Of a stretch of 64,000 bases of DNA, positions 78 through 42,750 are shown in pieces. The notes under the pieces were generated by a model. The model saw only the letters and a list, made by a program, of their open reading frames with translations. It was not told where the DNA came from and ran no database searches. The first letter of the stretch is position 1. Every line of letters begins with the position of its first letter. The position numbers and the translations under genes were made by a program. Origin of the DNA: Anaeramoeba ignava BMAN (Eukaryota; Protista; Anaeramoebae); the NCBI GenBank assembly GCA_028826165.1, contig JAPDFW010000071.1, positions 186,001 through 250,000 of the forward strand, written 5' to 3'.

Positions 78-3000
78 TTCTTCAAAAGTTGAAACAACCA
101 AAACATATGATACTGGAATGAGAAGAGCACAAGCAAATCCCAAACAAGTAATCCTTGAATTAAAACAACAAATTCGTGAATTAGAACAAAAGCTCGCACA
201 ATCACAAAAACAATCACCAAGTCCAACAAGAAAAAGTCCAGATAATTCAAACCAAGAAATACAAAGATTAAAGAATTTACTAAGAGAAAAAGACAAGAAG
301 ATTGCTTCAATGCAAGAGCTTGAAAAGAAAATTGAAAGATTGGAAGAAGACTTGAAAAAAGAAAAGCGTAAATCACCAGTTGTTAAAACAGAAATCAAAA
401 TTGAAAAAGTTGTTGATGAAAGTAAAGTAAGAGAACTTGAAAGGAAAAATAAAAGATTGGAAGATGATTTAAATAGGGAAAAGCGTAAATCACCAGTTGT
501 TAAAACAGAAACCAAAATTGAAAAAGTTGTTGATGAAAGTAAAGTAAGAGAACTTGAAAAGAAAGTGGAACATAAACATAAAAAATCAAAAGAAAGAAAA
601 AAGAAAATTGAAAAATTAGAAGATGATTTGAAAAAAGAAAAAAGCAAAGAACCAGTTGTTAAAACTGAAATTAAAACTGAAACCAAAGTTGAAAAAGTTG
701 TTGATGAAACCAAAATAAGAGAACTTGAAAAGAAAATTGAAAGATTGGAAGAAGATTTGAAAAAAGAAAAAAACAAAGCAACCAGTTGTTAAAACTGAAA
801 TTAAAACAGAAACCAAAATTGAAAAAGTTGTTGATGATTCCAAAATAAGAGAACTTGAAAATAAATTAAAAGATGTTGAAAAAGATAAGGGAGATCTTGA
901 AAAGAAATTAAAAGATGTTGAAGAAGACTTGAAAAAAGAAAAGAACAAAGCACCAATTGTTAAAACAGAAACCAAAGTTGAAAAAGTTGTTGATGAAACC
1001 AAAATAAGAGAACTTGAAAAGAAATTAAAAGATGTTGAAGATGATTTAAAAAAAGAAAAAAATAAAGCACCAGTTGTTAAAACAGAAACCAAAGTTGAAA
1101 AAGTTGTTGATGATTCTAAAATTAAAGAACTTGAAAAGAAAGTGGAACATAAACATAAAAAATCAAAAGAAAGAAAAAAGAAAATTGAGAAATTAGAAGA
1201 TGATTTGAAAAAAGAAAAAAGCAAAGAACCAGTTGTTAAAACTGAAATTAAAACTGAAACCAAAGTTGAAAAAGTTGTTGATGAAACCAAAATAAGAGAA
1301 CTTGAAAAGAAAATTGAAAGATTGGAAGAAGATTTGAAAAAAGAAAAAAACAAAGCACCAGTTGTTAAAACAGAAACCAAAATTGAAAAAGTTGTTGATG
1401 ATTCTAAAATAAGAGAACTTGAAAATAAATTAAAAGATGTTGAAAAAGATAAGGGAGATCTTGAAAAGAAATTAAAAGATGTTGAAGATGATTTAAAAAA
1501 AGAAAAAAACAAAGCACCAGTTGTTAAAACTGAAACCAAAGTTGAAAAAGTTGTTGATGAAACCAAAATAAGAGAACTTGAAAAGAAATTAAAAGATGTT
1601 GAAGATGATTTAAAAAAAGAAAAAAATAAAGCGCCAATTGTTAAAACAGAAACCAAAATTGAAAAAGTTGTTGATGATTCTAAAATTAAAGAACTTGAAA
1701 AGAAAGTGGAACATAAACATAAGAAAATCAAAAGAAAGAAAAAAGAAAATTGAAAAATTAGAAGATGATTTGAAAAAAGAAAAAAGCAAAGAACCAGTTG
1801 TTAAAACTGAAATTAAAACAGAAACCAAAGTTGAAAAAGTTGTTGATGATTCTAAAATAAGAGAACTTGAAAAGAAATTAAAAGATGTTGAAAAAGATAA
1901 GGGAGATCTTGAAAAGAAATTAAAAGATGTTGAAGAAGATTTGAAAAAAGAAAAAAACAAAGCACCAGTTGTTAAAACTGAAATTAAAACAGAAACCAAA
2001 ATTGAAAAAGTTGTTGATGATTCTAAAATAAGAGAACTTGAAAATAAATTAAAAGATGTTGAAAAAGATAAGGGAGATCTTGAAAAGAAATTAAAAGATG
2101 TTGAAGAAGATTTAAAAAAAGAAAAGAGCAAAGCACCAGTTGTTAAAACTGAAACCAAAGTTGAAAAAGTTGTTGATGAAACCAAAATAAGAGAACTTGA
2201 AAAGAAAATTGAAAGATTGGAAGAAGATTTGAAAAAAGAAAAGAGCAAAGAACCAATTGTTAAAACAGAAACTAAAACAGAAACCAAAGTTGAAAAAGTT
2301 GTTGATGATTCCAAAATAAGAGAACTTGAAAATAAATTAAAAGATGTTGAAAAAGATAAGGGAGAGCTTGAAAAGAAATTAAAACAAACCGAAGAAGATT
2401 TAAACACAGAAATAAGCAAAGGACCAGTTGTTAAATACAAAACACGAACAGTTGTTGATGATTCTAAAATTAAAGAACTTGAAAAGAAAGTGGAACATAA
2501 ACATAAGAAATCAAAAGAAAGAAAAAAGAAAATTGAAAAATTAGAAGAAGATTTGAAAAAAGAAAAAGAGAGTGGGAAAATATCAAAAATAACAAATTTG
2601 CCACAACAAACAAAAGAAGATTCGGAAGCAAAAGAATTAAAAACAAAACTTGATCAAGTGAACGATGAAAAACACAGAATAGAAAAGAAATTAAAAATGG
2701 AACTGAAAAAAGTTAAAGAAGAAAAAGAACAAATAGACAAACAATTATTCGAATTGAAACAGAAAAATGAAGAACAATCAAAAAAAATTCAATCTCAATT
2801 ACAAAAAATTATTGCATTAAAAAAGAATGAATCAAACACTGAGCAAAATAAACCAATAAGCCCAACAGAACAAACTCAAATCCAATCACTCCAGAAAAAA
2901 TTAAATGGAAGTTATCGTAAAGTCGAATCATTAACAAACGAAAACGAAACTTTACAGAAGAAAATCAAGGGTTACGAATCAGAAAAGAATGAATGGGAAA

Positions 3001-3769
3001 GAAAAGCAAAACAATTTCAGAAAGAAGTTGAAAATTTAAGAACAGCAAAACCTGTTGTAATATCGAATATAACAAGTGGAGGACCACCACCACCAATGGG
3101 AGGACCACCACCACCAACAGGCGGACCACCACCACCAACAGGAGGACCACCACCACCAACAGGCGGACCACCACCACCAACAGGCGGGCCACCACCACCA
3201 ACAGGAGGACCACCACCACCAATGGGAGGACCACCACCACCAAAAGGTGGACTACCACCACCAACAGGCGGAGGAGCAGGTTCACAAAATACTTTATTAT
3301 AAATTATAAATTATTTAAATTATTAATTATTATAAATTATATAAATAAATTATTTAAATTATTAATTATTATAAATAAATTATTTAAATTATTAATTATT
3401 ATAAAATATTTATTTAAATTATTTAAATTATAAATTATTTAAATTATTTAAATTATTATAAATTATTATAAAATATTTAAATTATTAATTATTTAAATTA
3501 TTAATTATAAATAAATATTTAAATTATAAATAGGTCCAATGTCTTCAGCCCTTCTTTCATCAATTACTTCATTTAGTAAGAATAAACTCAAGAAAACAGT
3601 AACAAAAGATACAAGTAGTCCAATAACAAAAAAAGATAATGACTCAAATCCATCTCCAACACCAACAACAGGTGGAGGTGGCGGTGGAATGAACTTCGCT
3701 CAATTAGCTCTTTCCCAAAGAGGACGTTTAAGAAAAGTTGTTTCCCAAATAGTAAAAAAGAAAAAATAA
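78..3769 (+). CDS. 5'-partial actin-regulatory protein: repetitive K/E coiled coil, (GGPPPPT)n polyproline tract and two WH2-like motifs (WASP/WIP/verprolin-like architecture)
   Basis: Acceptor CAG at 75-77. ORFs 118-792, 929-1753 and 1638-3302 carry the same repeat and join via single extra A bases at ~781 and ~1722. Intron 3280-3533 (GTTCAC...TAG) joins in frame to GPMSSALLSSITSFSKNKLKKT (WH2). A second WH2-like motif follows: FAQLALSQRGRLRKV. Confidence 0.75.
313..2570 (+). repeat. Coding tandem repeat built from modules (PVVKTETKVEKVVDETKIRELEKK / LKDVEKDKGDLEKK / VEHKHKKSKERKKKIEKLEDDL)
   Basis: Near-identical nucleotide blocks recur in shuffled order through the three ORFs. Confidence 0.95.
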
Positions 3770-4035: not shown

Positions 4036-6651
4036 ATGGATTCTATCACATGTCCAATCTGTTTTGAGACATTTTCAGTCAATAAACGCCCAGTAATAAT
4101 ATGTGAAGAAGAACATACAATCTGCGAAGACTGTCTCAAAGATCATGAAAATTGTCCATTTTGTCGACGTTCATTCAATAACTTTAATTTTATGCTTAAC
4201 GGATTATTGATGTCACTTTCAGAAGATAAACAGAGCCCTTCAATCAAGACGATGCCCGTGATTCCTTTTTCTGAATTAGATATACAGCCACAACCATTTG
4301 AGTCCGGAACTATTTCCTACATTTACGCGGCCAAATGGAGAAATAATTATTTTGCACTTAAAAATTTCAGTATTTCAAGCGATTCAAAAGTCGCGCTCTT
4401 TAAAAACGAGCTCAACATGATCTACGGACTCGATCATCCCAATATCATCAAAGTCTATGGGATGATAGAATATGAAAATGTGATGGGAGCTCTTATGGAA
4501 TTGGCCCAAGACGGGAATTTAAATACAAAAATTCAAAACTTGACTTTCCAAGAATCAATTAACTATTCGATTGGAATCACAAAAGGATTGATGTTTTTGC
4601 ATCAGAACTCGATTATTCATCGCCATTTAAAACCAGAAAATATATTGATATTTGAAAACGAGCCAAAAATTTCTGATTTTGGATTTTCTAAGTTATATCA
4701 AGAAGAATTCAATAAGAATTCATTCCCCGTTTTGGATGTTTATTTGGCTCCAGAAATTTTCCAACAGAAATCTTTTAATACTTCTTGTGATATTTATAGT
4801 TTGTCGATGATTTTGTATGAAATTTTTAGCAAAGAAAAACCCTTCCAAAATGAGTATTCTTTGAATCTTGAAATGGTTGTTACTAATCAAAAAAGACCCA
4901 CTTTGTCTCATCAATTTCCAAGGGAATTGGGTCAGTTGATTCAGAAAGGTTGGAATAATGATCCAAAAGATCGATGTTCTTTGAATGATTTTTTAAGTTG
5001 TTTAGAAGAAATGAAGAATTCGATAAGCCAAAGTGAATTTCAAATTAAAATTTAAAAATAAAATTAAAAATATTTAAAATTTCTTTATAAAAATAAAAAT
5101 AAGCATTCGCACTTCCAAGAAAACCAATGATGGGATTTGATTTACCACCGAAACCAAACCAATTCGGAAGTCCTCAAAATCAAGGATTAACATTACCAGC
5201 AAAACCAAATAAAGAATTTCAGTTACCAGCGAAACCCAACGAATCATTCAAAACAAAATCTCAATCAAGTGATTCACTATTTCTTCCACCAAAACCAAAC
5301 CAAGGATTAACACTTCCCGAAAGACCAAACACAGCATTCCAACTTCCAACAAAACCGATAAATTCAATGAACTTACCAAAAAAACCATTTGAAGAAATAA
5401 ATCTCCCACAAAAACCAATTGAAAATCTTTCACTTCCTCCAAAACCAACTGATGGATTAAATCTTCCTCGAAAACCTAATTATCCTACTCAATTTTATCG
5501 CAAACAACATCACACACTTCATCTCCCAAGAAAACCAATTGAAAACCTGAATCTTCCTCAGAAATCCAACGACACATTTAATCTCCCACCAAAACCAACC
5601 GATTCTTTTTCATTTTCGCCCCAAAAAAATGAGCGATTCAGTTTACCTCCAAAACCAAATGAAAAACAATATTCAAACAAAATAAGTGATCCGTTTCAAT
5701 TTTCATCCAAAACAAGCGATTCTTTCCAAGCTTCACCCAAAACAAGCGATTCCTTTCACGTTTCACCAAGATCAAGCGATCAATTCCAATTATCGCCCAA
5801 ATCAAGTGCGCTATTTAATCTCCCTCAAAAACCAAATCAACAATTGAATCTTCCACCAAAACCAAGCAAATCACCAACTTTCCCTCAAAAACCAAATCAA
5901 CAATTGAATCTTCCACCAAAACCAAGCAAATCACCAACTTTCCCTCAAAATCTAAATAAGAACTTAGATCTTCCTCCAAAACCAAGCAAATCACCATCTT
6001 TCCCTCAAAATCTAAACAAGAATTTAGATCTTCCACAAAAACCAAATCAAACATTGAATCTCCCTCCAAAACCAACTGGTCAATTAGATCTTCCACAAAA
6101 ACCAAATCAAACATTGAATCTTCCTCCAAAACCAACTGATCAATTAGATCTCCCACAAAAACCAAATCAAACATTGAATCTCCCTCCAAAACCAACTGAT
6201 CAATTAGATCTCCCACAAAAACCAACTGCAAATTTCAATCTTCCTCCAAAACCAACTGATTCTATTAATCTCCCTCCAAAACCAACTGATTCTATTAATC
6301 TCCCTCCAAAACCAACTGATTCTTTTAGTTCTTTTAAATTTCTTCCAAAACCTAGTGATTCTTTTAATCCTTTTAAACTTCCTCCAAAACCAACTGATTC
6401 TATTAATCTTCCTCCAAAACCAACTGATTCTATTAATCTCCCTCCAAAACCAACTGATTCTTTTAGTTCTCTTAAACTTCCTCCAAAACCATCTGAATTA
6501 ACAAGTAAAAAATTTTTCAAACAAATAAAAAAATATTTTTTTTTTGTTCCACTTTTTTTTAATTTGAATTTTTATTTATTAAAAAACAATTTTAGAGAAA
6601 ATCGTCACAGAAACAGCTTCAGGTTTCTTGTTAAGGAAAATACGTTTATAA
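4036..6651 (+). CDS. RING finger - TKL-like pseudokinase - LPxKP proline-rich repeat protein (exons 4036-5032, 5104-6504, 6596-6651)
   Basis: C3HC4 RING (CPIC...CEEEHTICEDC...CPFC). Kinase fold with FALK, HRHLKPEN, DFG and APE. Phase-1 intron 5033-5103 (GTGAAT...AAG) joins in frame to TFALPRKPMMGF and the 5127 ORF. Intron 6505-6595 gives the C-terminus TKKIVTETASGFLLRKIRL*. Confidence 0.8.
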
Positions 6652-6783
6652 AACAAATCAAAATTTTTAATCTTTTTTTCTTTTTTTTTCTTTTCTTTTC
6701 TTTACTCAAAAATCTCCCAAAAACAAAACATCTTTTATTTTTATTTTTATTTTTACTTTTATTTTTATTTTTATTTTTAATTT

Positions 6784-9700
6784 CTATTTCATCTTTTTTA
6801 AAATTAAATCAATTATTGAATTTTGATTTAATTGATAATAATCTTTAACATCTTCGAATTCTCCTTTCATTTCTTCTCTAATTTCTTTTGGAATTCCTTT
6901 TGAAAATTCTTTTGAAAATTTATCATGATAAAGAAAATAAATTAATTGAGTTATCGTTTCAAATGATTTCTTTGAATAATCATGAACTTGATTTGATGAA
7001 TCGTTCACATTTAATTGAAACATTCCTTTGAATAATTCACTCCTTATCATTAAAATCAATTTATGAACTTTGATTTCTTTTTCTTCACAAATTATTGTAA
7101 AATCTTTTGTTGATTCTTGTTCATATAGTTTTGATAAATCTTTTATTATTCCTTTTCTTCCTCTTTTTGGTTCGATACCAATTTCTTTGCAAAATTCTTC
7201 CATTTTCACTTCTTTTTCAGTTAAAATGGAAATTTCTTCTTTGGAATTTTTTGGATCATTTGGATTTATCAATAGAAATTGCTCACTAAAACGATCAAAA
7301 TCAGGAAATCCAGTGTAAAGAAAATTCAAAACAATCTCAACATCTTCTTTTGGTTTTTGTTTGCAAAAGTTGATAAATTGTTGAAAAAGGAGATTGTTTT
7401 GATCAAATCTTGCCAAAAGAATCAATTTATGAACATTAAATTTGCAAAAATCTTTGGATTCAATTTGGAAATCAGGAAAATTTTCTTTTGATTTAAAGAA
7501 ATTATTCAAATCTTGGTTAAAAGAATAGATTTGAGATAAAATTGGTCTTAATTTATTTGCGAATTTGGAATAATATTGCAAATCTAAAAGAATTTCATCA
7601 TTCATTAAGAAAAAATTGGAAATCTCTTCATTTTGTTGTTTAATTGAAAGTGAAAGAGGAGTTTTTTTTTGAGAATCTTGGGTATTTGTAAAAGCGCCTT
7701 TTGAGATGAGAAATTTAATCATTCCAAGTGTATTTTGATTTTGATTTTGATTTTGATTTTGATTTTGATTTTCATTTTCATTTTCATTTTGATTTTTCTT
7801 TTTTTCACAAAGAAAATGTAAAGCTGTTGATAATTTTTTTGTTTGCAAATTAACATAAGCCCCTTTTTCAACAAGAATCTTAATAATTTCAAATGCATCT
7901 GCATTACTATTTTGGCATGCGCAATGTAAAGGTGTTGGTGACTGATTTACTTGTGAATTAACATCAGCTCCTTTTTCAACAAGATATTTGACAATTTGAA
8001 AAGAATTCGGATCGTTGTATTTGTTTTTACAAAAATAATGTAAAATGGTTTGATTGTCGGATGATTTGGTGTTGATATCGAAACCCTTTTCAATAACGTA
8101 ACTTATAATATCAAATGAATTTGGATTTGGATGTTTGTTCCTACAGATATAAAAAATGAAACTTTCGTTATTAGTGTCTCGGGCATTGATATCTGCTCCT
8201 GATGTAACAAGAAACTTGATGATTTCCAATGAATCAGAGTTCTTATTTAAAGAGACAAAATGCAAAACCGTTTGATTGTATGTTGTTTTTGCATTAATAT
8301 CGCCTCTTTTTGAAACAAGAAATTTGATAATTTCAAGTGCATTTGGATTATGGATTACGCTCGCAAAATGCAAAGCTGTTTGGTTTTGCACTTTTGTTTT
8401 CTCGTTGATTTTAGCCTTTTTAGAAATGAGATATTTGATGATTTCAAATGAATTTGGATTGATATTGATAGTTGCATAATGCAAAGGAGTTTTTTCTTCT
8501 ATTTTTGTTTTTGCATTGATTTTGGCTCCTTTTGAAATTAAGTACTTAGTAATCTCAATAGAATTTGGGTTATGACTCTCACAAATCAAGTGTAAAGGAG
8601 TTTCTTCTTTATCTTTTGTTTTCGCATTTACTTTGGCCTTTTTGGAAATGAGATATTTGGTGATTTCAAGTGAATTTGGATGATTGTTTTGGCAAATAAT
8701 ATGCAAAGGAGTTTCTTCTTTATCTTTTGTTTTTGCATTTACTTTTGCTTTTTTAGAAATGAGATATTTGATGATTTCAAGTGAATTTGGATTTTTATTC
8801 TGGCAAATAATATGCAAAGGAGTTTCTTCTTTATCTTTTGTTTTTGCATTAATTTGCGCTTTTTTGGAAATGAGATATTTGATAGTTTCAATTATGTTTG
8901 GATTTTCATTTTGACAAGCAAAATGTAAAGGAGTTGAATGATCAATATTTGGAGAATTGATATCCGCACCAGATTCACAAAGAAACTGGACTTTTTGCAG
9001 CGGATCTTCGTTTTCCTTGAGACAAGCAATATGCAAAACTGTGTTGTTTCTCTTATTTTTGGTATTGATATCAACTCCTTTCGAAATTAAAAATCTCATA
9101 ATTTGAATTCCATTTTGGATTTGAAAATGGCAAACAGAATGGAAAGGATAGAATCCCTTTTTATGCAGCAAATTAAAATCAGCTCCCAATTCAACCAGAG
9201 TCTCAATGATTTTGGGGAATTCTCACTTTCAGTTTGACAAATAATTTGCAAAGGTGTTGAGCCAGTATCAAGTTTTGCATCGAGATCAGCTCCTTTCGAA
9301 ACTAAATACTTGATGATATCAGCTGAATATTCAGTTTGGAATTGACAAAGATAATGCAAAGGAGTTGCCAATTGCCCCTTTGTTTTAGTATTTACATCAG
9401 CTCCATTTTCCACAAAAATTTGGATGATTTCAAGAGATTTTTCATTTTGAGTTTCGCAAAGAATATGCAAAAGAGCAGCATCTTTTTCGTATGTTTTTCC
9501 ATTAACATCAGCACCTTTTTCAACCAAAAACTTGATGATTTCAACGGAGTAATTCTTTTGGCACACATAATTCAAGATATTCGATCCATTATTAGTTTTG
9601 GCAAGAATATCCGCTCCGTTTTCAATAAGATATTTAAGAATATCAAGTGTGAATCCACTTTCCTTTTCGTTTTCACAAGCGGCAATCAAAGGAGATAAAC

Positions 9701-9935
9701 CGCTAGTATCTCTTGCATTGATATTTGCTCCTTTCGAAATGAGAAACTTGATGATCCCCATCGAATATTGATTCTGGTAATTACAGGCAAAATGTAATGC
9801 TGTTACTAAATATCCTTTTGTTTGCGCGTTTATATCAGCTCCTGATTCAAGAAGAGCTTTCATAATTTCGATTGAATTTTCACTTGGTTCTTTTGCAATT
9901 CTAATCAAACTTAAACTTAATTCGGATTGATCCAT
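6784..9935 (-). CDS. Ankyrin-repeat protein with two C-terminal BTB/POZ domains (putative CUL3 substrate adaptor)
   Basis: More than 20 ankyrin repeats (TPLHxxC...GADIN). BTB motifs PDFQIES...NVHKLILLAR and KDFTIICEEKEIKVHKLILMIRSELFKGMF. ORFs 9096-9995 and 6784-9189 join via a 1-nt shift near 9212. ATG at 9935. Confidence 0.85.
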
Positions 9936-10045
9936 TTTTTTTTTTTTATAAAATAAATAATAAAAATATTCTAAAAGAAAAAAAATGAAAAGCAAAAATT
10001 TTTTTCATTTTTTTTCTCTTTTCCTTTCTCTCAAATTAATTTAAT

Positions 10046-11804
10046 ATGGAATCAATTGTTTGTCCAATTTGTTTTGAAACATTTTCAAACGAAAAAAAAC
10101 CAATAATAATATGTGAACAAGGACATACAATTTGTCAAATTTGCTTAAAAGAAATGGATAGTTGTCCATTTTGTAGAAGTTCTTTTGAAAACTCTAAATT
10201 AATTATCAACAGACCTTTGTTATCAATAATCGAAGAGATGCAGAAGATATCTATTAAGACTATCCCAGTGATTCCGTTAGAGGAATTGGAAATTGAGTCT
10301 CAACCTTTCCAAATTAGTGATTTATCTTATATTTACAAAGCCAAATGGAGAAACTCTTTTTTTGCTCTTAAAAAATTACGAACTTTCGATATTGAAAAAA
10401 AAGACAAATTCAAAAACGAACTTAATTTGATTTTTGGACTAAATCATCCAAACTTGGTCCAAGTTCATGGAATATTTGAATTTGAAAATTCAATTGGGAT
10501 TTTAATGGATTTGTCAGAAGAAGGAAATTTAAAAGATAAAATTGCAAATTTGTCCTTTGAGGATTCTGTTAATTTTTCAATAGGGATTGTTCAAGGATTG
10601 GCCTTTTTGCATCGAAATGCAATCATTCATAGGTTTTTAAAGCCAGAAAATATCTTGATTCTTAAAAATCAACCCAGAATAACTGATTTTGGACTTTCCA
10701 AATTGTATCAACAAGAATCTGATAAAAAATCTCTTACTTTTTCAAATGTTTATATCGCTCCAGAAATTTTACAACACAAATACTCGTTTGATACTTCTTG
10801 TGATATTTATAGTTTGTCATTCATTTTATACCAAATTTTTAGTAAAGAAAAACTTGATGCTGAAAAATTTATAAGTGAGCAAAAAAAGCCAATAATCTCA
10901 AACAATTTTCCACGTGATTTGGCTCAATTAATTCAGAAAGGTTGGAGTAATGATCCAAAAAATCGGTGTTCTTTAAATGATTTTTTGAAATGTTTAGAAG
11001 AAATGAGATCTTTATTAAATCAAAGTAAATTTAATATTTTATTACAAAAGAAAACTTAAAAAATGATTTCAAAAAAAAAAATTATTAAATAGAAAACATT
11101 GAAGATGAAAAAAAATCTAAATCCCAAACTGGAGGTATAAATTTTTCTTAACAAACAAAAAAAAAAAAGAAATTAACAAATCAAAAATTAATCAAATTAT
11201 CAAGAATTTTTTGGAAGTATAATAGAATTTGAAAGAGATGAAAAAAAACCTGAATCACTTAGACGAAAAGAAGTAAGAATCATAATTTAAATTTAATTTA
11301 AATTTAAATTTAATTTATTTATTTAAATGAATAAAGAAAAAACATTCCAAAAAATCCAAGAAAATTTTTGGATTTGCAAAATTAGATTTTCAATCACCGA
11401 ATCAAACACATTTAACATTTTCAATTGGAGAAAAGATTGAAATTCTAAAGATTCTCCAAGATGGATGGGGAGAAGGGTTATTAGATGGGAAAGTAGGATT
11501 GATTCCATTAAATTTTCTTGAAATTATAGAAGAAGAAATTGATCAAAAAAATTGGAAACCAAGATCAGGACCAAAACCTGTTCAAGTAAAAATTCCACCA
11601 AAAATTTTTCCAGCTAAAGTTCTTTATAGACCTCCTAAATTAAAAATGAGAGCGATTCTTGATTTTAAAGGTGAAAATGGAGAATTAAGTTTTGAAGTTG
11701 GTGATATTGTTGAAGTTATTGAAAAAGATGATAGTGGTTGGTGGAAGGGTATGCTTAATGGAGTAACTGGAGTATTTCCAAATAGTTTTTTTGAGAAAAT
11801 TTAA
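10046..11804 (+). CDS. RING finger - TKL-like pseudokinase - SH3 - SH3 protein (exons 10046-11024, 11093-11134, 11205-11272, 11337-11804)
   Basis: Paralog of the 4036 gene (RING; HRFLKPEN, DFG, APE). Three GT-AG introns (11025-11092, 11135-11204, 11273-11336) keep the frame. They expose SH3-1 (FAKLDFQSPNQTHLTFSIGEKIEILKILQDGWGEGLLDGKVGLIPLNFL) and SH3-2 (RAILDFKGENGELSFEVGDIV...GWWKG...GVFPNSF). Confidence 0.8.
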
Positions 11805-12035: not shown

Positions 12036-15000
12036 TTAAAAGTGTGTTGTGATGACAGGAACTGAAGGAACAGTGCAAACACCACACATATTATTTGCTT
12101 GAGCCATTTTGCAATATCCTTTATCACCCCATAATTCACTCCAAGAATTTTTAATAATCCAAAATGGAGTTCCATCTTCTTCGCCCCAACCAACAAGCAA
12201 AACACCATGATCAAGTCCATCAAAATCACTGTGACAATCTTTACTTGAATAAATTCCACTTTGATAATAAACAAAGTCAAAATGTCCAGCATCAATTGCA
12301 ATAGCAAGTGGTCCATTTGCATATAACATTTCTTTTGTTAATTCAATATCTCCTGAAACTGAAACATTAAGATAGTGTGAAACTCCAATTTTTTGCATTG
12401 ATTTATCATATCCACAATAACTATCCATACAAAGATATGGATATAATTCTTCAGTTGTTAATCCATTTTGAGTCATCCAATCATAAGCTCCATACATCTT
12501 TTAAATTTTTATTATTATTTAAATTTAATTTTTAATTTTTGAATTTAATTTTTGAATTTAAAAAATTACCATTCCTCCTTCACATGCAGAATTACCTTCT
12601 GCCCAACTACATGCCATTAAAGCTTGTTCTGAAAATGTTTCCATTTTTCCTGTTGCTAAGAAATAAGCACCTATTTTTTTTTCCAAAAATTAAAAAAATT
12701 TGAATTAAAAATTTAGAAAATAAAATTGAGTTTTTTTTTACCTTCTGTTGCTCCTGTTGTTGCAAAAGACCAACAAGAACCACAAACACCTTGATCTTTA
12801 ACTAAAGAAACTGCACCATAATCCAACCAACTAAATGAATCAGGTAAATCTAAGTTTTGTCTTTGATAAGGAACAGCATTCTTAAGTTGAACATTAATTT
12901 CTGAATACTTTTTAGGAAGCATTAAAGATTTAAATTCTTCTAAAGTTAAATCTGCAAAATGATTTGGAGCCACTAAAATAAAATAAATTAAATTAAATTT
13001 TAAATTCAATAAATAATTAAATTTAAAAGAAAAATAACAAACATTTAAAAGAACGTTGAGAATTTAATTCATCAATTCTACGTAAATTTTCTTCATAGAT
13101 TAGTTTTCTTTTCTCATATTCGTTTCCTGTGTAATCTTTATTATATTCATTAACATAAGAATTAAATGAACGTGAATTTCTTAAACCTGAAACAAGAGCA
13201 CGAAGAGGAACAGGTGCAACTTTATCAGAATAAACAGTTTCAGTAGAATTACAAATAGGAGGAATATCATAACAGTTGGCATCATTAACATTTGGCTAAA
13301 AAATTATAAATAAAATTATAAATTAAATTATAAATTAAATTATAAATTAAATTATAAATAAAATTATAAATTAAATTATAAATTAAATATAAATTAAAAT
13401 ATAAAAAAAATTATAAATTAAATTATAAATAAAATTATAAAAAAAATTATAAATAAAATTATAAATTAAATTATAAATTAAATTATAAATAAAATTATAA
13501 AATTTAAAAATAAAATAAATAAAAATTATAAATTAAATTATAAATAAAATTATAAATAAAATTATAAATAAAATTATAAATAAAATTATAAATAAAATTA
13601 TAAATAAAATTATAAATTAAATTATAAATAAAATTATAAATAAAATTATAAATAAAATTATAAATTAAATTATAAATTAAATTATAAATAAAATTATAAA
13701 TAAAATATAAATAAAATTATAAATTAAATTATAAATTAAATTATAAATTAAAATTATAAATTAAAATTATAAATTAAAATATAAATAAAATTATAAATAA
13801 AATTATAAATTAAAATTATAAATTAAATTATAAATTAAATTATAAATAAAATTATAAATTAAAATTATAAATAAAATTATAAATAAAATTATAAATTAAA
13901 ATAAAATTATAAATAAAATTATAAATAAAATTATAAATTAAAATTATAAATAAAATTATAAATAAAATTATAAATTAAATTATAAATTAAATTATAAATA
14001 AAATTATAAATTAAATTATAAATAAATTAAATTATAAATAAAATTATAAATAAAATTATAAATTAAATTATAAATTAAATTATAAATAAAATTATAAATT
14101 AAATTATAAATAAATTAAATTATAAATAAAATTATAAATAAAATTATAAATAAATTAAAATTATAAAAAAAAAATAAATAAAATTATAAATTAAATTATA
14201 AATTAAAATTATAAATAAAAATTATAAATAAAATTATAAAATAAAATTATAAATAAAATTATAAATAAAATTATAAATAAAATTATAAATAAAATTATAA
14301 ATAAAATTATAAATAAAATAATAAATAAAAAAAAAATTATAAAATAAAATTATAAAATTAAATTATAAAATTAAATTATAAATAAAATTATAAATAAAAT
14401 TATAAATAAAATTATAAATTAAATTATAAATAAAATTATAAATAAAATTATAAATTAAATTATAAATTAAAATTATAAATTAAATTATAAATTAAATTAT
14501 AAATAAAATTATAAATAAAATTATAAATTAAATTATAAATAAAATTATAAATAAAATTATAAAATAAAAATTATAAATTAAAATAATAAAATAAAATTAT
14601 AAATAAAATTATAAATAAAAATTATAAATTAAATTATAAATAAAAATTATAAATAAAATTATAAATAAAATAATAAAAAAAAAATATAAATAAAATTATA
14701 AATAAAATTATAAATAAAAAAAAATAAAATTATAAATAAAATTATAAATAAAAATTATAAATAAAATTATAAATAAAATTATAAATAAAATTATAAAAAA
14801 TTAAATTATAAATAAAATTATAAATAAAATTATAAATAAAATTATAAATAAAATTATAAATAAATTATAAATAAAATTATAAATAAAAATATAAATAAAA
14901 TTATAAAAATAAAATTATAAATAAAATTATAAATAAAAATATAAATTAAATTATAAATTAAATTTATAAAAATAAAATTATAAAAAAATAAATTATAAAT

Positions 15001-17450
15001 AAAATTATAAATTAAATTATAAAATAAAATTATAAATAAAATTATAAATAAAATTATAAATAAAATTATAAATAAAATTATAAACAAAAATTATAAATAA
15101 AATTATAAAATAAAATTATAAATAAAATTTATAAATAAAATTATAAATAAAATTATAAATAAAATTATAAATAAAAATTATAAAATTAAAATTATAAATA
15201 AAAATTATAAATAAAATTATAAATAAAATTATAAATAAAATAAAAATTCTAAATTATAAATAAAAATTATAAATAAAATTATAAATAAAATTATAAATAA
15301 AATTATAAATAAAATATATAAATAAAATTATAAATAAAATTATAAATTAAAATTATAAATAAAAATTATAAATAAAATTATAAATAAAATTATAAATTAA
15401 AATTATAAATAAAAATTAAAATTATAAATTAAAATAATAAATAAAATTATAAATTAAAATTATAAATTAAATTATAAATAAAATTATAAATAAAATTATA
15501 AATAAAATTATAAATAAAATAAAATTTATAAATAAAATTATAAATAAAATTATAAATAAAATTATATAAATTAAAATTATAAATAAAATTATAAATTAAA
15601 TTATAAATTAAAATTATAAATTAAATTATAAATAAAATTATAAATTAAATTATAAATAAAATTATAAATTAAATTATAAATAAAATTATAAATAAAATTA
15701 TAAAATAAAATTATAAAAATTAAATTATAAATAAAAATTATAAATTAAAAATATAAATAAAATTATAAATAAAATTATAAATAAAAATTATAAATAAAAT
15801 TATAAATAAAATTATAAATTAAAAATAAATAAAATTATAAATAAATAAAATTATAAATTAAAATTATAAATAAAATTATAAATTAAAATTATAAATAAAA
15901 TTATAAATTAAATTATAAATTAAATTATAAATTAAATTATAAATTAAAATTATAAATTAAATTATAAATAAAATTATAAATTAAATTATAAATAAAATTA
16001 TAAATAAAATTATAAATTAAATTATAAATTAAATTATAAATTAAAATTAAATATAAAATATAAAAAAAAAAATTATAAATTAAATTATAAATAAAATTAT
16101 AAAAATTATAAATAAAATTATAAATTAAATTATAAATTAAATTATAAATTAAAATTATAAATTAAATTATAAATAAAATTATAAATAAAATTATAAATAA
16201 AATTATAAATAAAATTATAAATTAAATTATAAATAAAATTATAAATAAAAATTATAAATAAAATTATAAATTAAATTATAAATAAAATTATAAATAAAAT
16301 TATAAATAAAATTATAAATAAAATTATAAAATAAAATTATAAATTAAATTATAAATAAAATTATAAATAAAATTATAAATAAAATTATAAATTAAAATTA
16401 TAAATTAAATTATAAAATAAAATTATAAATTAAAATTATAAATTAAATTATAAATAAAATTATAAATAAAAATATAAATTAAATTATAAATAAAAATTAT
16501 AAATTAAATTATAAATAAAATTATAAATTAAAATTATAAATAAATTATAAATTAAATTATAAATAAAATTATAAATTAAATTATAAATTAAATTATAAAT
16601 AAAATTATAAATAAAAATATAAATTAAATTATAAATAAAATTATAAATAAAATTATAAATAAAAATATAAATTAAATTATAAATTAAATTATAAATAAAA
16701 TTATAAATTAAAATTATAAATTAAATTATAAATTAAATTATAAATAAAATTATAAATTAAATTATAAATAAAATTACAAATAAAAATATAAATAAAATTA
16801 TAAATAAAATTACCTCATAAGAATAATAATCTAAAATATAAATGTCATAATGACTATGGAACACAATATTATAACCATGAAGTAAATATCTAACAGGATT
16901 TCCATCAGCATCAGTATAAAAAGTATAAGAATTTGACTTATTATATTCAGTAATATTCATTTGCCAATAATAACAATGAATTCCACGAACAACACTTTCA
17001 CCCATATAAACCCAAGCAGAATCAGTAAGATTAGGCAAAACATTTGGGAGATTTGAGTCAACAGCAGTAGATGACGGTCCTGCATTCTGAAATATTGTGC
17101 AACCTTGATGGTCTTGCTGAATTCGTAATTCGTACGTTTTGTTCAAATCATCCCGAATTATATCTGTTCCTAAAGCTGTTGTAATATTCATTGAATAGTA
17201 ATCAACTCGTTCATGATCTGAATCTCCATCAAAATTAACAAGAATTGGTTCTGTTACGTTTCCATTTGGTATTTGCCAAATTCCTGTAACTCGGTACTAT
17301 TTGAATTTAAAATATTATTTTAATTTAAAAAATTTTTATTATTTTTATTTTATTTTTAAAAACCTTTGTTGGATAAACTGGTGGATTAATTCCAAATGTT
17401 GTAGAAAATAAAAGACAAAAAGTAAATGTTAATGCAAAAATTTTCAACAT
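12036..17450 (-). CDS. Papain-family (C1A) cysteine protease with long N-terminal domain, 26/29-kDa proteinase / CfaD type; 6 exons (17450-17364, 17296-16814, 13295-13043, 12972-12742, 12670-12570, 12497-12036)
   Basis: Signal peptide [21 protein letters not shown]-terminal domain [10 protein letters not shown]...EPI...RVDYY and [11 protein letters not shown]29 prodomain (NHFADLT). Catalytic motifs [21 protein letters not shown] and IIKNSW. All introns are GT-AG. Confidence 0.9.
13300..16810. repeat. 12-bp AT satellite (ATTATAAATAAA / ATTATAAATTAA) filling the 3.5-kb intron 13296-16813 of the protease gene
   Basis: Five units per 60 nt; almost no G or C. Confidence 0.95.
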
Positions 17451-38866: not shown

Positions 38867-41800
38867 ATGTCAGATAGTGATTTGGAATTAGAAACATTTG
38901 AAACAATTCAATTAAACGATCCAGACGAAGAACCACCATTACCATGGAATTACGAAGAATATCGGAGTCCATTTACATCACACATTCATTATTCATGCGG
39001 ACATCAAGTACTAATTGAGCAATTAGACGATGAGCAATTAATATCAAAAAAATGTCCTATTTGCCAGAACGATCAATCACCACTTTCGGTTATCCAAAAA
39101 AAACACTTAAAATGCCCTCAACTTTACTCAGAAAACATCTCAGGAAAAATAAAAGAAATGGGAGAAGATCCAACAATTCGGAACAGAAAATCAGGCGTTC
39201 ATGAATACTATCTGAACCAGCAAAGATTACTGCAGAAATACGGAAGCGATCTGCAAAATGTTCCCGTAAAAAGAAACTATATTACAAAACATGATCCTGC
39301 GAATTTTATGCCCCAAATAGATTCGCAAATAGAAAATTCAACAATTTCGCAAGTTGTCCAAGAAACCGAACTTACAGACCCAACAGAACCAACAGAAAAG
39401 AGCCAAGAAGTTCTTCTCAAAATGAAGGAGCAACGTCGGAAAACGATCCAAACAAAAGCCAAAGAAAAAGAGCAAAAAATAACGGACTTGCAACTTTGGA
39501 TTTCTTTTATTACGAATTTTGTCCTTGTTATTCTCAAATCAATTGCTGTTTCTGTTTCTTCTTCTGCAACGGTTGTTGCCTCGCTAATGGATTCTATTCT
39601 TGATATCCTTTCTTGTTTCACAGTCATTTTCACTGAAAGATTTTCGCGCAAGAAGTCTTTTAATGATCTTTATCGATATCCAGTTGGCAAATCAAGAATG
39701 GAACCCATTTTAATTCTCGTTTTTAGTTCAGTTACTTCAACAATGGGAATCCAATTGTTTATTCAGTCCATCCAGCATTTGATTGGCAAGAAAACTAAAG
39801 TCGAGTTTGGTGTTTATCCTTTCGTTGTTTTGCTGTTTACTGTTGGTGTTAAATTGATTTTGTATATTTGGTGTCGTTTTTCAAAGAGATCTGTCATTCG
39901 TATTCTTTCTAAAGATCATCGAAATGATGTTTTTAGTAATTTGGTTGGTGTTATAATGGCTGAAATGGCCACAAAATATTATTGGAGGTAATTAATATTA
40001 AATTTTTAAATAAATTTTCAAATTTTGAAATAAAATTGATTATAAAATTGATTATAAAATTGATTATAAAATTGATTATAAAATTTATTATTAAATTGAT
40101 TATTAAATTTATTATAAAATTGATTATTAAATTGATTATTAAATTGATTATTAAATTTATTATTAAATTGATTATTAAATTGATTATTAAATTTATTATT
40201 AAATTGATTATTAAATTGATTATTAAATTGATTATAAAATTGATTATAAAATTAATTATAAAATTAATTATAAAATTAATTATTAAATTGATTATTAAAT
40301 TGATTATAAAATTATTTATAAAATTGATTATAAAATTTATTATTAAATTAATTAAAAAAGTGGAATAAAATTGATTATAAAATTGATTATAAAATTAATT
40401 ATAAAATTGATTATTAAATTGATTATTATTAAATTGATTTAAAATTGATTATTAAATTGATTATTAAATTGATTATAAAATTGATTATAAAATTGATTAT
40501 TAAATTAATTAAAAAATTAATTATTAAAATTAATTATAAAATTATTAAATTGATTATTAAATTAATTATAAAATTAATTATTAAATTAATTATAAAATTG
40601 ATTATAAAAAATTATAAAAAAATTGATTAAAATTAATTATAAAAATTAATTATAAAATTAATTATAAAATTAATTATAAAATTAATTATAAAATTAATTA
40701 TAAAATTGATTATAAAATTAATTATAAAATTAATTATAAAATTGATTATAAAATTGATTATAAAATTGATTATAAAATTAATTATAAAAAAATTATAAAA
40801 TTTATAAAATTAATTATAAAATTTATAAAATTGATTATAAAATTAATTATAAAATTAATTATAAAATTATTTATAAAATTAATTATAAAATTAATTATAA
40901 AATTATTTATAAAATTGATTATAAAATTAATTATAAAATTATTTATAAAATTATTTATAAAATTATTTATAAATTGATTTATTTATAAAATTTATTATAA
41001 AATTTATTATAAAATTGATTATAAAATTGATTATAAAATTAATTATTAAATTTATTATAAAATTGATTATAAAATTAATTATTAAATTTATTATAAAATT
41101 AATTATAAAATTAATTATTAAATTGATTATAAAATTGATTATAAAATTGATTATAAAAATTGTTTAATTATAAAATTAATTATAAAATTGATTATAAAAT
41201 TAATTATAAAAATAAAATATAAAATTAATTATTATAAAATTAATTATAAAAGTTAAATTGATTATAAAATTAATTATAAAATTGATTATAAAATTAATTA
41301 TAAAATTAATTATAAAATTAATTATAAAATTATAAAATTTATAAAATTAAATTAATTATAAAAATTGGAATAAATTTTTAAATAAAAAATAAAAATATAA
41401 AATTAATTTAATTATTAAAATTAATTATAAAATTAATTATAAAATTGATTATTAAATTGATTATAAAATTGATTATAAAATTGATTATAAAATTGATTAT
41501 AAAATTGATTATAAAATTGATTATAAAATTAATTATAAAATTGATTATAAAATTAATTATAAAATTAATTATAAAATTGATTATAAAATTAATTATAAAA
41601 TTGATTATAAAATTAATTATAAAATTGATTATTAAAAATTAATTATAAAATTAATTAAAAATTGATTATAAAATTAAATTGATTATAAAATTAATTATAA
41701 AATTGATTATAAAATTAATTATAAAATTGATTATAAAATTAATTATAAATTAATTATAAAATTAATTATAAAATTGATTATAAAATTAATTATAAAATTA

Positions 41801-42750
41801 TTTATAAAATTAATTATAAAATTAATTATAAAATTAATTATAAAATTGATTATAAAATTGATTATAAAATTAATTATAAAATTATAAAAATTATAAAAAA
41901 AATTAAATGGATTAAAAATTGGAATAAAATTGATTATAAAATTAATTATAAAATTAAAATTATTAATTATAAAATTTATAAAATTAATTATAAAATTAAT
42001 TATAAAATTAATTATAAAATTAATTATAAAATTAATTATAAAATTTATAAAAAAAATTTAATTATAAAAATTATAAAATTAATTATAAAATTGATTATTA
42101 AATTGATTATTAAATTGATTATTAAATTAATTATAAAATTTATTATTAAATTTATTATTAAATTAATTATAAAATTGATTATAAATTGATTATTAAATTG
42201 ATTATTAAATTGATTATAAAATTGATTATAAAATTGATTATAAAAATTAATTAAAAAAAGTGGAATAGATTTTTAAATAAATTAAATTTAAAATTAAACT
42301 AAAATTTAGAATGGATTTTATTGGAGAAATGACTATTGCTTTTATGATCCTTTTAACTTGGATTACTTTAATTTATAAAAACATTTTCAATTTAATTGGA
42401 GTAAGTGCACCTCCAGAACTCTTCAATAGATTAACATTTCTTGCATTAAAACATCATCAAGCAATATTAGCAGTAGAAAGAGTTCAAACACTTAAATTTG
42501 GTTCAAAATATTTTGTTGAAATTGATATTGTTCTTCCTTATGATATGGTAATTTTATAATTTAAATTTATTATTTAAAACATTTTAAAATTTTTTTTTTT
42601 TTTTCTTTTTGGAAAAATTTTTTCTAGCTTTTAGAACAATGTCATAGAATCGGTGAATCTTTACAAGATAAAGTAGAAGAAATTCCTGAAGTTGAAAGAG
42701 CATTTGTTCATGTTGATTCTCAAATTGAACACAAACCAGAACATAATTAA
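38867..42750 (+). CDS. Cation diffusion facilitator, Mn-CDF (MTP8-11-like); exons 38867-39987, 42310-42547, 42628-42750
   Basis: TM2 ASLMDSILD (DxxxD), YRYPVGKSRMEP, TM5 DHRND, and C-terminal FVEIDIVLP...HRIGESLQDKVEEIPEVERAFVHVD...HKPEH. Introns are phase-compatible. Confidence 0.9.
40030..42260. repeat. 12-bp satellite (AAATTGATTATA / AAATTAATTATA) filling the 2.3-kb CDF intron 39988-42309
   Basis: Visible 12-nt period, which gives the spurious (KLII)n ORFs. Confidence 0.95.

Follow-up and report, generated by a model that had tools for sequence, protein, structure and literature searches.

How does a pair of neighboring genes that share one protein head come to carry two tails as different as an array of short proline motifs and a tandem of SH3 domains, and are these tails made for each other? 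The question is raised by two genes in a 64,000-nucleotide (nt) stretch of the genome of the anaerobic amoeba Anaeramoeba ignava (contig C72, positions 186001-250000), here called the window. Gene A (4036-~6651) and gene B (10046-11804) lie on the same strand, 5 kb apart. Each starts with a RING finger followed by a protein kinase-like domain, after which A continues into repeated LPxKP motifs and B into two SH3 domains. The analysis below places both genes in a RING-kinase family of about 40 members with interchangeable tails, and suggests that the tail of A is an SH3 docking array for which B is one candidate reader among many.

A common RING and kinase N terminus had been claimed in a preliminary description of this locus, and Pfam matches bear this out in the head open reading frames (ORF) of both genes (4036-5055 and 10046-11059), which are 60% identical. 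Several RING models match the two N termini; Sina_RING scores 34.6 bits in B, above its cut-off of 29.3, and 26.9 bits in A, just below it. When compared with the C3HC4 pattern (C-x2-C-x(9-39)-C-x(1-3)-H-x(2-3)-C-x2-C-x(4-48)-C-x2-C), both RING fingers are complete, with eight of eight zinc ligands (C6, C9, C23, H27, C30, C33, C40, and C43). Both have an Ile after the first Cys and an Arg directly after the last one, two positions with a role in E2 binding. The Pkinase profile matches over positions 9-258 of 263 in A (E 1.7e-45) and 15-259 of 263 in B (E 1.7e-41), i.e. both proteins have the kinase fold. In an alignment with 33 paralogous heads, the HRD aspartate, which 29 paralogs keep, is replaced in both, the motif reading HRH in A and HRF in B. 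Both proteins retain DFG, the VAIK Lys, the alphaC Glu, and the Asn of HRDLKPxN. Their Gly-rich loops are degenerate, A having a single Gly there and B lacking any. Judged by motifs in the usual way, A and B are thus pseudokinases, as the same description had called them, and their motifs do not predict competent kinases.

Spliced models of the two genes were searched exon by exon, and gene B was compared in the same manner with the public protein P0001. Both heads end at a phase-1 donor (CAAA/GT, the slash marking the exon boundary) at 5033 in A and 11025 in B, 11 residues past the Cys of a CLEEM motif in either case, which verifies the shared intron position proposed earlier. The four exons predicted for gene B encode P0001 (518 amino acids, aa) residue for residue, and the three junctions previously suggested (11024/11093, 11134/11205, and 11272/11337) agree exactly with that protein. 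The fusion in gene B is thus already annotated publicly, under a wrong name, P0001 being called "palmitoyltransferase" or "MAPKKK"; a search for P0001 found no encoding contig. For gene A, the predicted intron (5033-5103) is of 7% GC, as compared with 33 and 35% in the exons on either side, and past 5103 the head joins in frame to the sole stop-free frame of six (5104-6500), the others containing 21-35 stops. The low GC content, the family-conserved position of the donor (see below), and the continuation into the only open frame all support this intron. For background, the A. ignava genome is 80.65% A+T overall and its introns are 91.86% A+T, and RNA-seq mapping for the strain is stated in the genome paper (PMC11550330). 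The 3' end of gene A is provisional and of low confidence: a donor at 6505, a stretch of 11% GC, and a mini-exon at 6596-6651 fit in frame, and no C terminus resembling this mini-exon was found at the paralogous loci.

The tail of gene A, for which 30-35 LPxKP motifs spaced by about 10-11 aa had been estimated, contains 31 exact motifs (34 with a relaxed pattern), most often spaced by 10 aa (18 times) or 20 aa (eight times), in a frame that is open over 465 codons. The motif lies in a decamer of consensus Phi-N-L-P-P-K-P-T/N-D/Q-S, of which L, P, K, and P are the same in every copy, Leu and Pro being encoded by various synonymous codons. The tail is rich in Pro (21%) and Lys (11%) and matches no Pfam domain. 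Since the 3' half of the array consists of near-exact tandem repeats of 30, 60, and 138 nt, part of the array is young. No other locus similar to this tail was found in the A. ignava genome, in or out of the family. Canonical SH3 ligands have a basic residue at the class-defining flank (class I, +xxPxxP; class II, PxxPx+), and the PxxP core itself occurs 37 times in the tail. With PPKP taken as the core, it is flanked by T/N-D/Q, none of them a basic residue. Read as Phi-x-L-P-x-K, the motif has its Lys at the class II position and L, F, or I in place of the first Pro.

The last exon of gene B encodes, as claimed before, two SH3 domains (SH3_1, two stretches, 81.4 bits). Both keep the GW and the P-x-N/S-F positions, which makes them regular members of the SH3 family, and an AF2 model has beta strands in each, with a predicted local distance difference test score (pLDDT) of 84-90. 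By sequence, the closest solved relatives of the second domain are the C-terminal SH3 of GRB2, which is nearest, p47phox, and CIN85/CD2AP. The two domains are joined by a 30-residue Pro/Lys linker, in which the IPPK and RPPK motifs noted previously were located, together with a GPKP. In the same model the linker is disordered (pLDDT <50) and docked on neither SH3. With the linker undocked in the model, the suggestion that it might be autoinhibitory is a guess.

How exceptional is this pair? A search with the head of gene A found about 40 near-full-length RING-kinase heads in the A. ignava genome, many of which are clustered in tandem (contigs C128, C61, and C73). The other family members (public models of the family as a whole include P0001, P0002, P0003, P0121, and P0122) have the same RING-kinase head exon, 44-60% identical, followed by the same post-kinase intron. 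HRD is kept in 29 of the 34 heads with a readable HRD region, and most keep the Gly-rich loop, VAIK, and DFG. At least 23 of 32 heads have a phase-1 A/GTAA donor close behind the kinase domain, eight residues past the same Cys, i.e. three residues upstream of its position in A and B; the junction predicted for one member matches the public protein P0003. Past this conserved intron, the tails are unrelated. As assessed by Pfam, they include SH3, ubiquitin-like (in three genes; two in L035 and one in L042), TLDc (five domains in L043), RhoGEF-PH (L020), and PCMT methyltransferase (L030) domains, and many are low-complexity repeats of the NQ, KS, or DS type. Five other RING-kinase genes have a single SH3, homologous to the first SH3 of gene B and 42-53% identical to it. 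Gene B is the only member seen with a second SH3, after which it stops, whereas the other SH3-tailed members continue further, in L016 with an ARM-like start. Public names of family proteins, such as "palmitoyltransferase", "nek11", and "ulk3", are misleading. The words kinase, RING, ubiquitin, and SH3 do not occur in the main text of the genome paper (PMC11550330), where the family is therefore undescribed.

The heads of L020, with its RhoGEF-PH tail, and L023, with an SH3 tail, are nearly identical, which suggests a recent tail swap. At L021/L034 (G000:C128:45500-65499), a tandem cluster holds at least nine RING-kinase heads, some of them damaged, with AGFG or DFR for DFG, HHD for HRD, LQP for LKP, or in-frame stops; it looks like a birth-and-death array.

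Phylogenetic analysis of the heads groups A and B as sisters with 100/100 support, in agreement with the duplication proposed earlier. Their stem is long (0.64), as are their tips (0.44 and 0.38, for a median tip of 0.08). Set against the rest of the family, the A/B lineage has lost the catalytic aspartate and its heads have evolved fast. The other SH3-tailed genes belong to a clade of 18 members, which does not include the pair. The heads of these genes are 44-47% identical to the head of A. The divergence of their SH3 from the first SH3 of B is about equal to this head divergence, which would fit an ancestral SH3 tail, later replaced in A and extended by a second SH3 in B. The preliminary description had explained the pair by a shuffling of exons at the intron that the two have in common. 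An exchange of tails at this conserved phase-1 intron is supported, but it is not particular to the pair, the same donor being followed by unrelated tails throughout the family.

If the array of A is a ligand, is it one made for B? A back-translated LPPKP pattern gave 87 hits in the A. ignava genome, as compared with 41 for a reversed control. The hits are clustered, with 18 in gene A and 25 on contig C140, where two huge ORFs (821 and 1535 aa) contain at least 16 SH3 matches interleaved with EKPK(D/E)II repeats and two DIQLPPKPK arrays. This locus (L044, G000:C140:56500-66400; ORFs 497..2962(-) and 4142..8749(-)) would encode one or more giant SH3-array proteins with 20 SH3-like cores separated by nine-residue EKPK(D/E)II spacers, two of the linkers having turned into nine and seven copies of DIQLPPKPK. 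It thus puts SH3 domains and a putative ligand array within one chain. The 1.2-kb gap between its two ORFs also looks like coding repeat. Elsewhere, a 354-aa Pro-rich, WASP/WIP-like ORF (L045, 1082..2146(-)) has about eight xLPPKP followed by KPPPPPRP repeats, and a myosin-I-like tail (L047, 299..1777(+)) is followed by (F/I/L)PPKPQIQ arrays. As judged from these predicted proteins, the PhiPPKP motif is common to actin-type proteins of A. ignava. Because PhiPPKP arrays recur in both SH3-rich and actin-type proteins, LPxKP looks like a general motif of the SH3 world in this organism, which favors the earlier view of it as an SH3-associated motif. The genome also contains at least 150 SH3 matches, which makes gene B one candidate reader among many. 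Beyond paralogy and the 5-kb distance, nothing links A to B in particular.

Taken together, these findings lead us to lean, somewhat more than we doubt, towards the following proposal. Both proteins would be E3 scaffolds of the RING type in which the kinase module is dead, and the ~31-valent SH3 docking array of A would concentrate SH3 proteins at a ubiquitin ligase, B and the active RING-kinase-SH3 paralogs perhaps among them. The family is built from a constant first exon (C3HC4 RING and kinase), a conserved phase-1 intron, and interchangeable tail exons. A and B would act as RING E3 ligases or scaffolds, their dead kinase domain serving for binding or regulation, not as an enzyme. The ~31 PhixLPxKP decamers of A are most likely a multivalent SH3 docking array, which might gather SH3 proteins beside the RING, namely gene B, the five RING-kinase-SH3 paralogs with an intact kinase, and other SH3 proteins, and result in ubiquitination or co-clustering. 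Several points weigh against this proposal. LPxKP is not an exact match to either canonical class of SH3 ligands, and that LPPKP arrays and SH3 domains occur together is associative evidence, which does not prove recognition. Gene B is a plausible client of the array, one candidate among others. RING E3 activity and the loss of kinase activity are read from motifs. The first intron of gene A is deduced from sequence, and no public protein with the tail of gene A was found, either by word search (among proteins of 319-1015 aa) or by exact look-ups of the unspliced ORFs; nor was gene A among the public proteins returned by a word search with its head (among proteins of 183-581 aa). Anaeramoeba orthologs average only 37% identity (PMC11550330), and word searches could miss them.

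A more specific model, originally proposed for this locus, is that A and B form a dedicated lock and key: the array of A would bind the tandem SH3 of B and polymerize or phase-separate both RING proteins into an active ubiquitin-ligase assembly, with the linker of B being autoinhibitory. The two genes are indeed sister paralogs on the same strand with complementary tails, B alone in the family has been seen with a second SH3, and the GPKP, IPPK, and RPPK of its linker resemble the motif of A. We nevertheless consider this model unlikely. Neither the motif nor SH3 domains are private to the pair, both being widespread in the genome, a homologous SH3 is present in the five other RING-kinase paralogs, the linker of B is undocked in the AF2 model, and the pairing itself is predicted from motif and domain content. 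A bolder version of the same idea is that the pair makes an SH3/proline-motif condensate that is built from paralogs and is itself a ubiquitin ligase. One copy of a duplicated RING-kinase-SH3 gene would have swapped its SH3 tail for a ~31-valent motif read by the SH3 of its sister, the motif possibly stemming from an ancestral inter-SH3 linker in which IPPK and RPPK are still there, and co-assembly of the dead-kinase RING proteins would switch on the E3 by clustering. In a comparison of the array with the linker of B, the best local alignment (two decamers) had an E value of 0.056, computed with no correction for composition and short of significance. We regard this version as quite improbable.

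The array might alternatively be a Lys-rich polyproline-II spacer rather than a recognition array, perhaps rod-like and rigid, or else a tract that accepts ubiquitin from the adjacent RING in auto-ubiquitination, drifting by repeat expansion. Its Pro/Lys-rich composition with no Pfam domain, the near-exact 60- and 138-nt tandem copies that indicate recent expansion, and the many family tails that are plain NQ, KS, or DS repeats would all fit a spacer. We give this explanation little credence, however, as L, P, K, and P are invariant in 31 copies, against a background of changing flanks and of synonymous changes in the Leu and Pro codons, and the same motif recurs in SH3-rich proteins. Finally, that the fusion in gene A is wrong, with the stop at 5053-5055 ending the head and an in-frame ATG at 5127 starting a separate gene for the array, or A being in decay with the array untranslated, would agree with the public protein searches, the deduced splice, and the provisional 3' end, but is very improbable given that only 71 nt of 7% GC separate the head from the array, that the canonical GT..AG borders have the position and phase conserved in the family and keep the array in frame, that the array frame is uniquely open over its 465 codons, and that the head ORF of gene A is intact with a complete RING.

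How does this compare to known systems? KEEP ON GOING (KEG) of Arabidopsis combines RING and kinase domains with ankyrin and HERC2-like repeats (PMC3697954, PMC5385374). Like KEG, A and B fuse a RING E3 domain directly to a protein kinase domain. Unlike KEG, no ankyrin or HERC2-like domain is matched by Pfam in either, and A and B are not KEG-type proteins; ankyrin-BTB ORFs do lie next to them, on the opposite strand and so outside the A and B proteins. The fusion in KEG is of independent origin, its lineage being distant. POSH (SH3RF1), an E3 ligase that scaffolds kinases, has a RING finger and four SH3 domains and no kinase-like domain. Gene B has in common with POSH an N-terminal RING and several SH3, and differs from it by its kinase-like domain; the likeness is one of shared domains.

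On the side of the tails, multivalent assemblies of SH3 domains and proline-rich motifs (PRM) include Nck/N-WASP and engineered SH3n-PRMn proteins, and CIN85 clusters the RING E3 Cbl; an architecture in which one chain has many motifs and the other tandem SH3 is known to polymerize or phase-separate. GRB2-SOS1 is another such assembly (PMC11391413, PMC5704491). A and B have the same layout, with many PxxP-type motifs on one chain and tandem SH3 on the other. They differ from these systems in that their binding is putative, the PhixLPxKP motif is non-canonical, and both partners would be RING-pseudokinase paralogs. Among SH3 ligands, those of the N-terminal SH3 of Crk are of the PxLPxK type, and those of the C-terminal SH3 of GRB2 and of STAM are RxxK motifs ending in KP. 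These are the ligand types closest to the motif of gene A, by its LPxK core and Lys-Pro end; unlike in Crk ligands, the first Pro is a Leu, Phe, or Ile, and unlike in RxxK ligands, the Arg is absent. A literature search found no described pair of RING-pseudokinases with SH3 domains and PRM. We see A and B as a variant of three known kinds, the RING-kinase fusion (as in KEG), the RING-SH3 scaffold (as in POSH), and the multivalent SH3/PRM assembly.

If the array does dock SH3 domains, gene A would encode a 31-valent platform fused to a RING E3, with a sister gene that carries matching reader domains. The pair would be a compact natural test case linking valency, clustering, and ubiquitin-ligase activation, and would show that new signaling pairs can arise by duplication and tail swap at a conserved intron. 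More secure is that A. ignava holds a RING-kinase family of about 40 genes with modular tails, one lineage of which turned pseudokinase. No protein with the fusion of gene A turned up in the public set that we searched.

The coordinates of both genes and of the interval between them are listed in Table 1.

Table 1. Features of genes A and B and of the intervening region, in window coordinates.
Feature	Position	Strand	Description
Gene A exon 1	4036..5032	+	RING ~nt 4051-4167, kinase-like domain ~nt 4303-4995, HRH at 4618-4626; Pfam and motif table
Gene A intron 1 (inferred)	5033..5103	+	71 nt, GT..AG, phase 1, 7% GC; position and phase common with gene B
Gene A exon 2	5104..6504	+	disordered array, 31 LPxKP motifs; GC 35%
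Candidate gene A intron 2	6505..6595	+	phase-1 donor A/GTAAAA, 91 nt, 11% GC; composition and frame only; low confidence
Candidate gene A terminal mini-exon	6596..6651	+	18 codons, TAA stop 6649-6651, 32% GC
Intervening gene(s), outside the pair	6784..9995	-	ankyrin repeats and BTB domain; Pfam
Gene B exon 1	10046..11024	+	RING ~nt 10061-10177 and kinase-like domain, HRF at 10628-10636; = P0001 residues 1-326
Gene B intron 1	11025..11092	+	68 nt, phase 1, 10% GC; public model P0001 and composition
Gene B exon 2	11093..11134	+	14 codons; matches P0001
Gene B intron 2	11135..11204	+	70 nt
Gene B exon 3	11205..11272	+	matches P0001
Gene B intron 3	11273..11336	+	64 nt
Gene B exon 4	11337..11804	+	SH3-1 ~11376-11507, Pro/Lys linker, SH3-2 ~11649-11780, stop
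Gene B linker motifs	GPKP 11568-11579, IPPK 11592-11603, RPPK 11628-11639	+	

Several neighboring features deserve mention. The ORFs between A and B contain many ankyrin repeats and a BTB domain, a Cul3-adaptor-like architecture; the two ORFs overlap at 9096-9189 and are probably a single gene with an intron. Upstream of gene A, an ORF at 1638-3302(+) encodes a coiled-coil repeat region with nine GGPPPP(T/M) units at its end, and the ORF at 3539-3769(+) encodes a WH2 motif (Pfam E 2.5e-07); the two probably make up a single actin regulator of the WASP/verprolin-like type, interrupted by an intron. On the 3' side of gene B, ORF translations at 12036-13009(-) reveal fragments of a papain-type cysteine protease. 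The GC content drops to near 0 over kilobases at ~13700-16000 and ~40000-42000, the former stretch, where read (13700-14120), being a tandem repeat of A/T only, with ATTATAAATAAA among its units.

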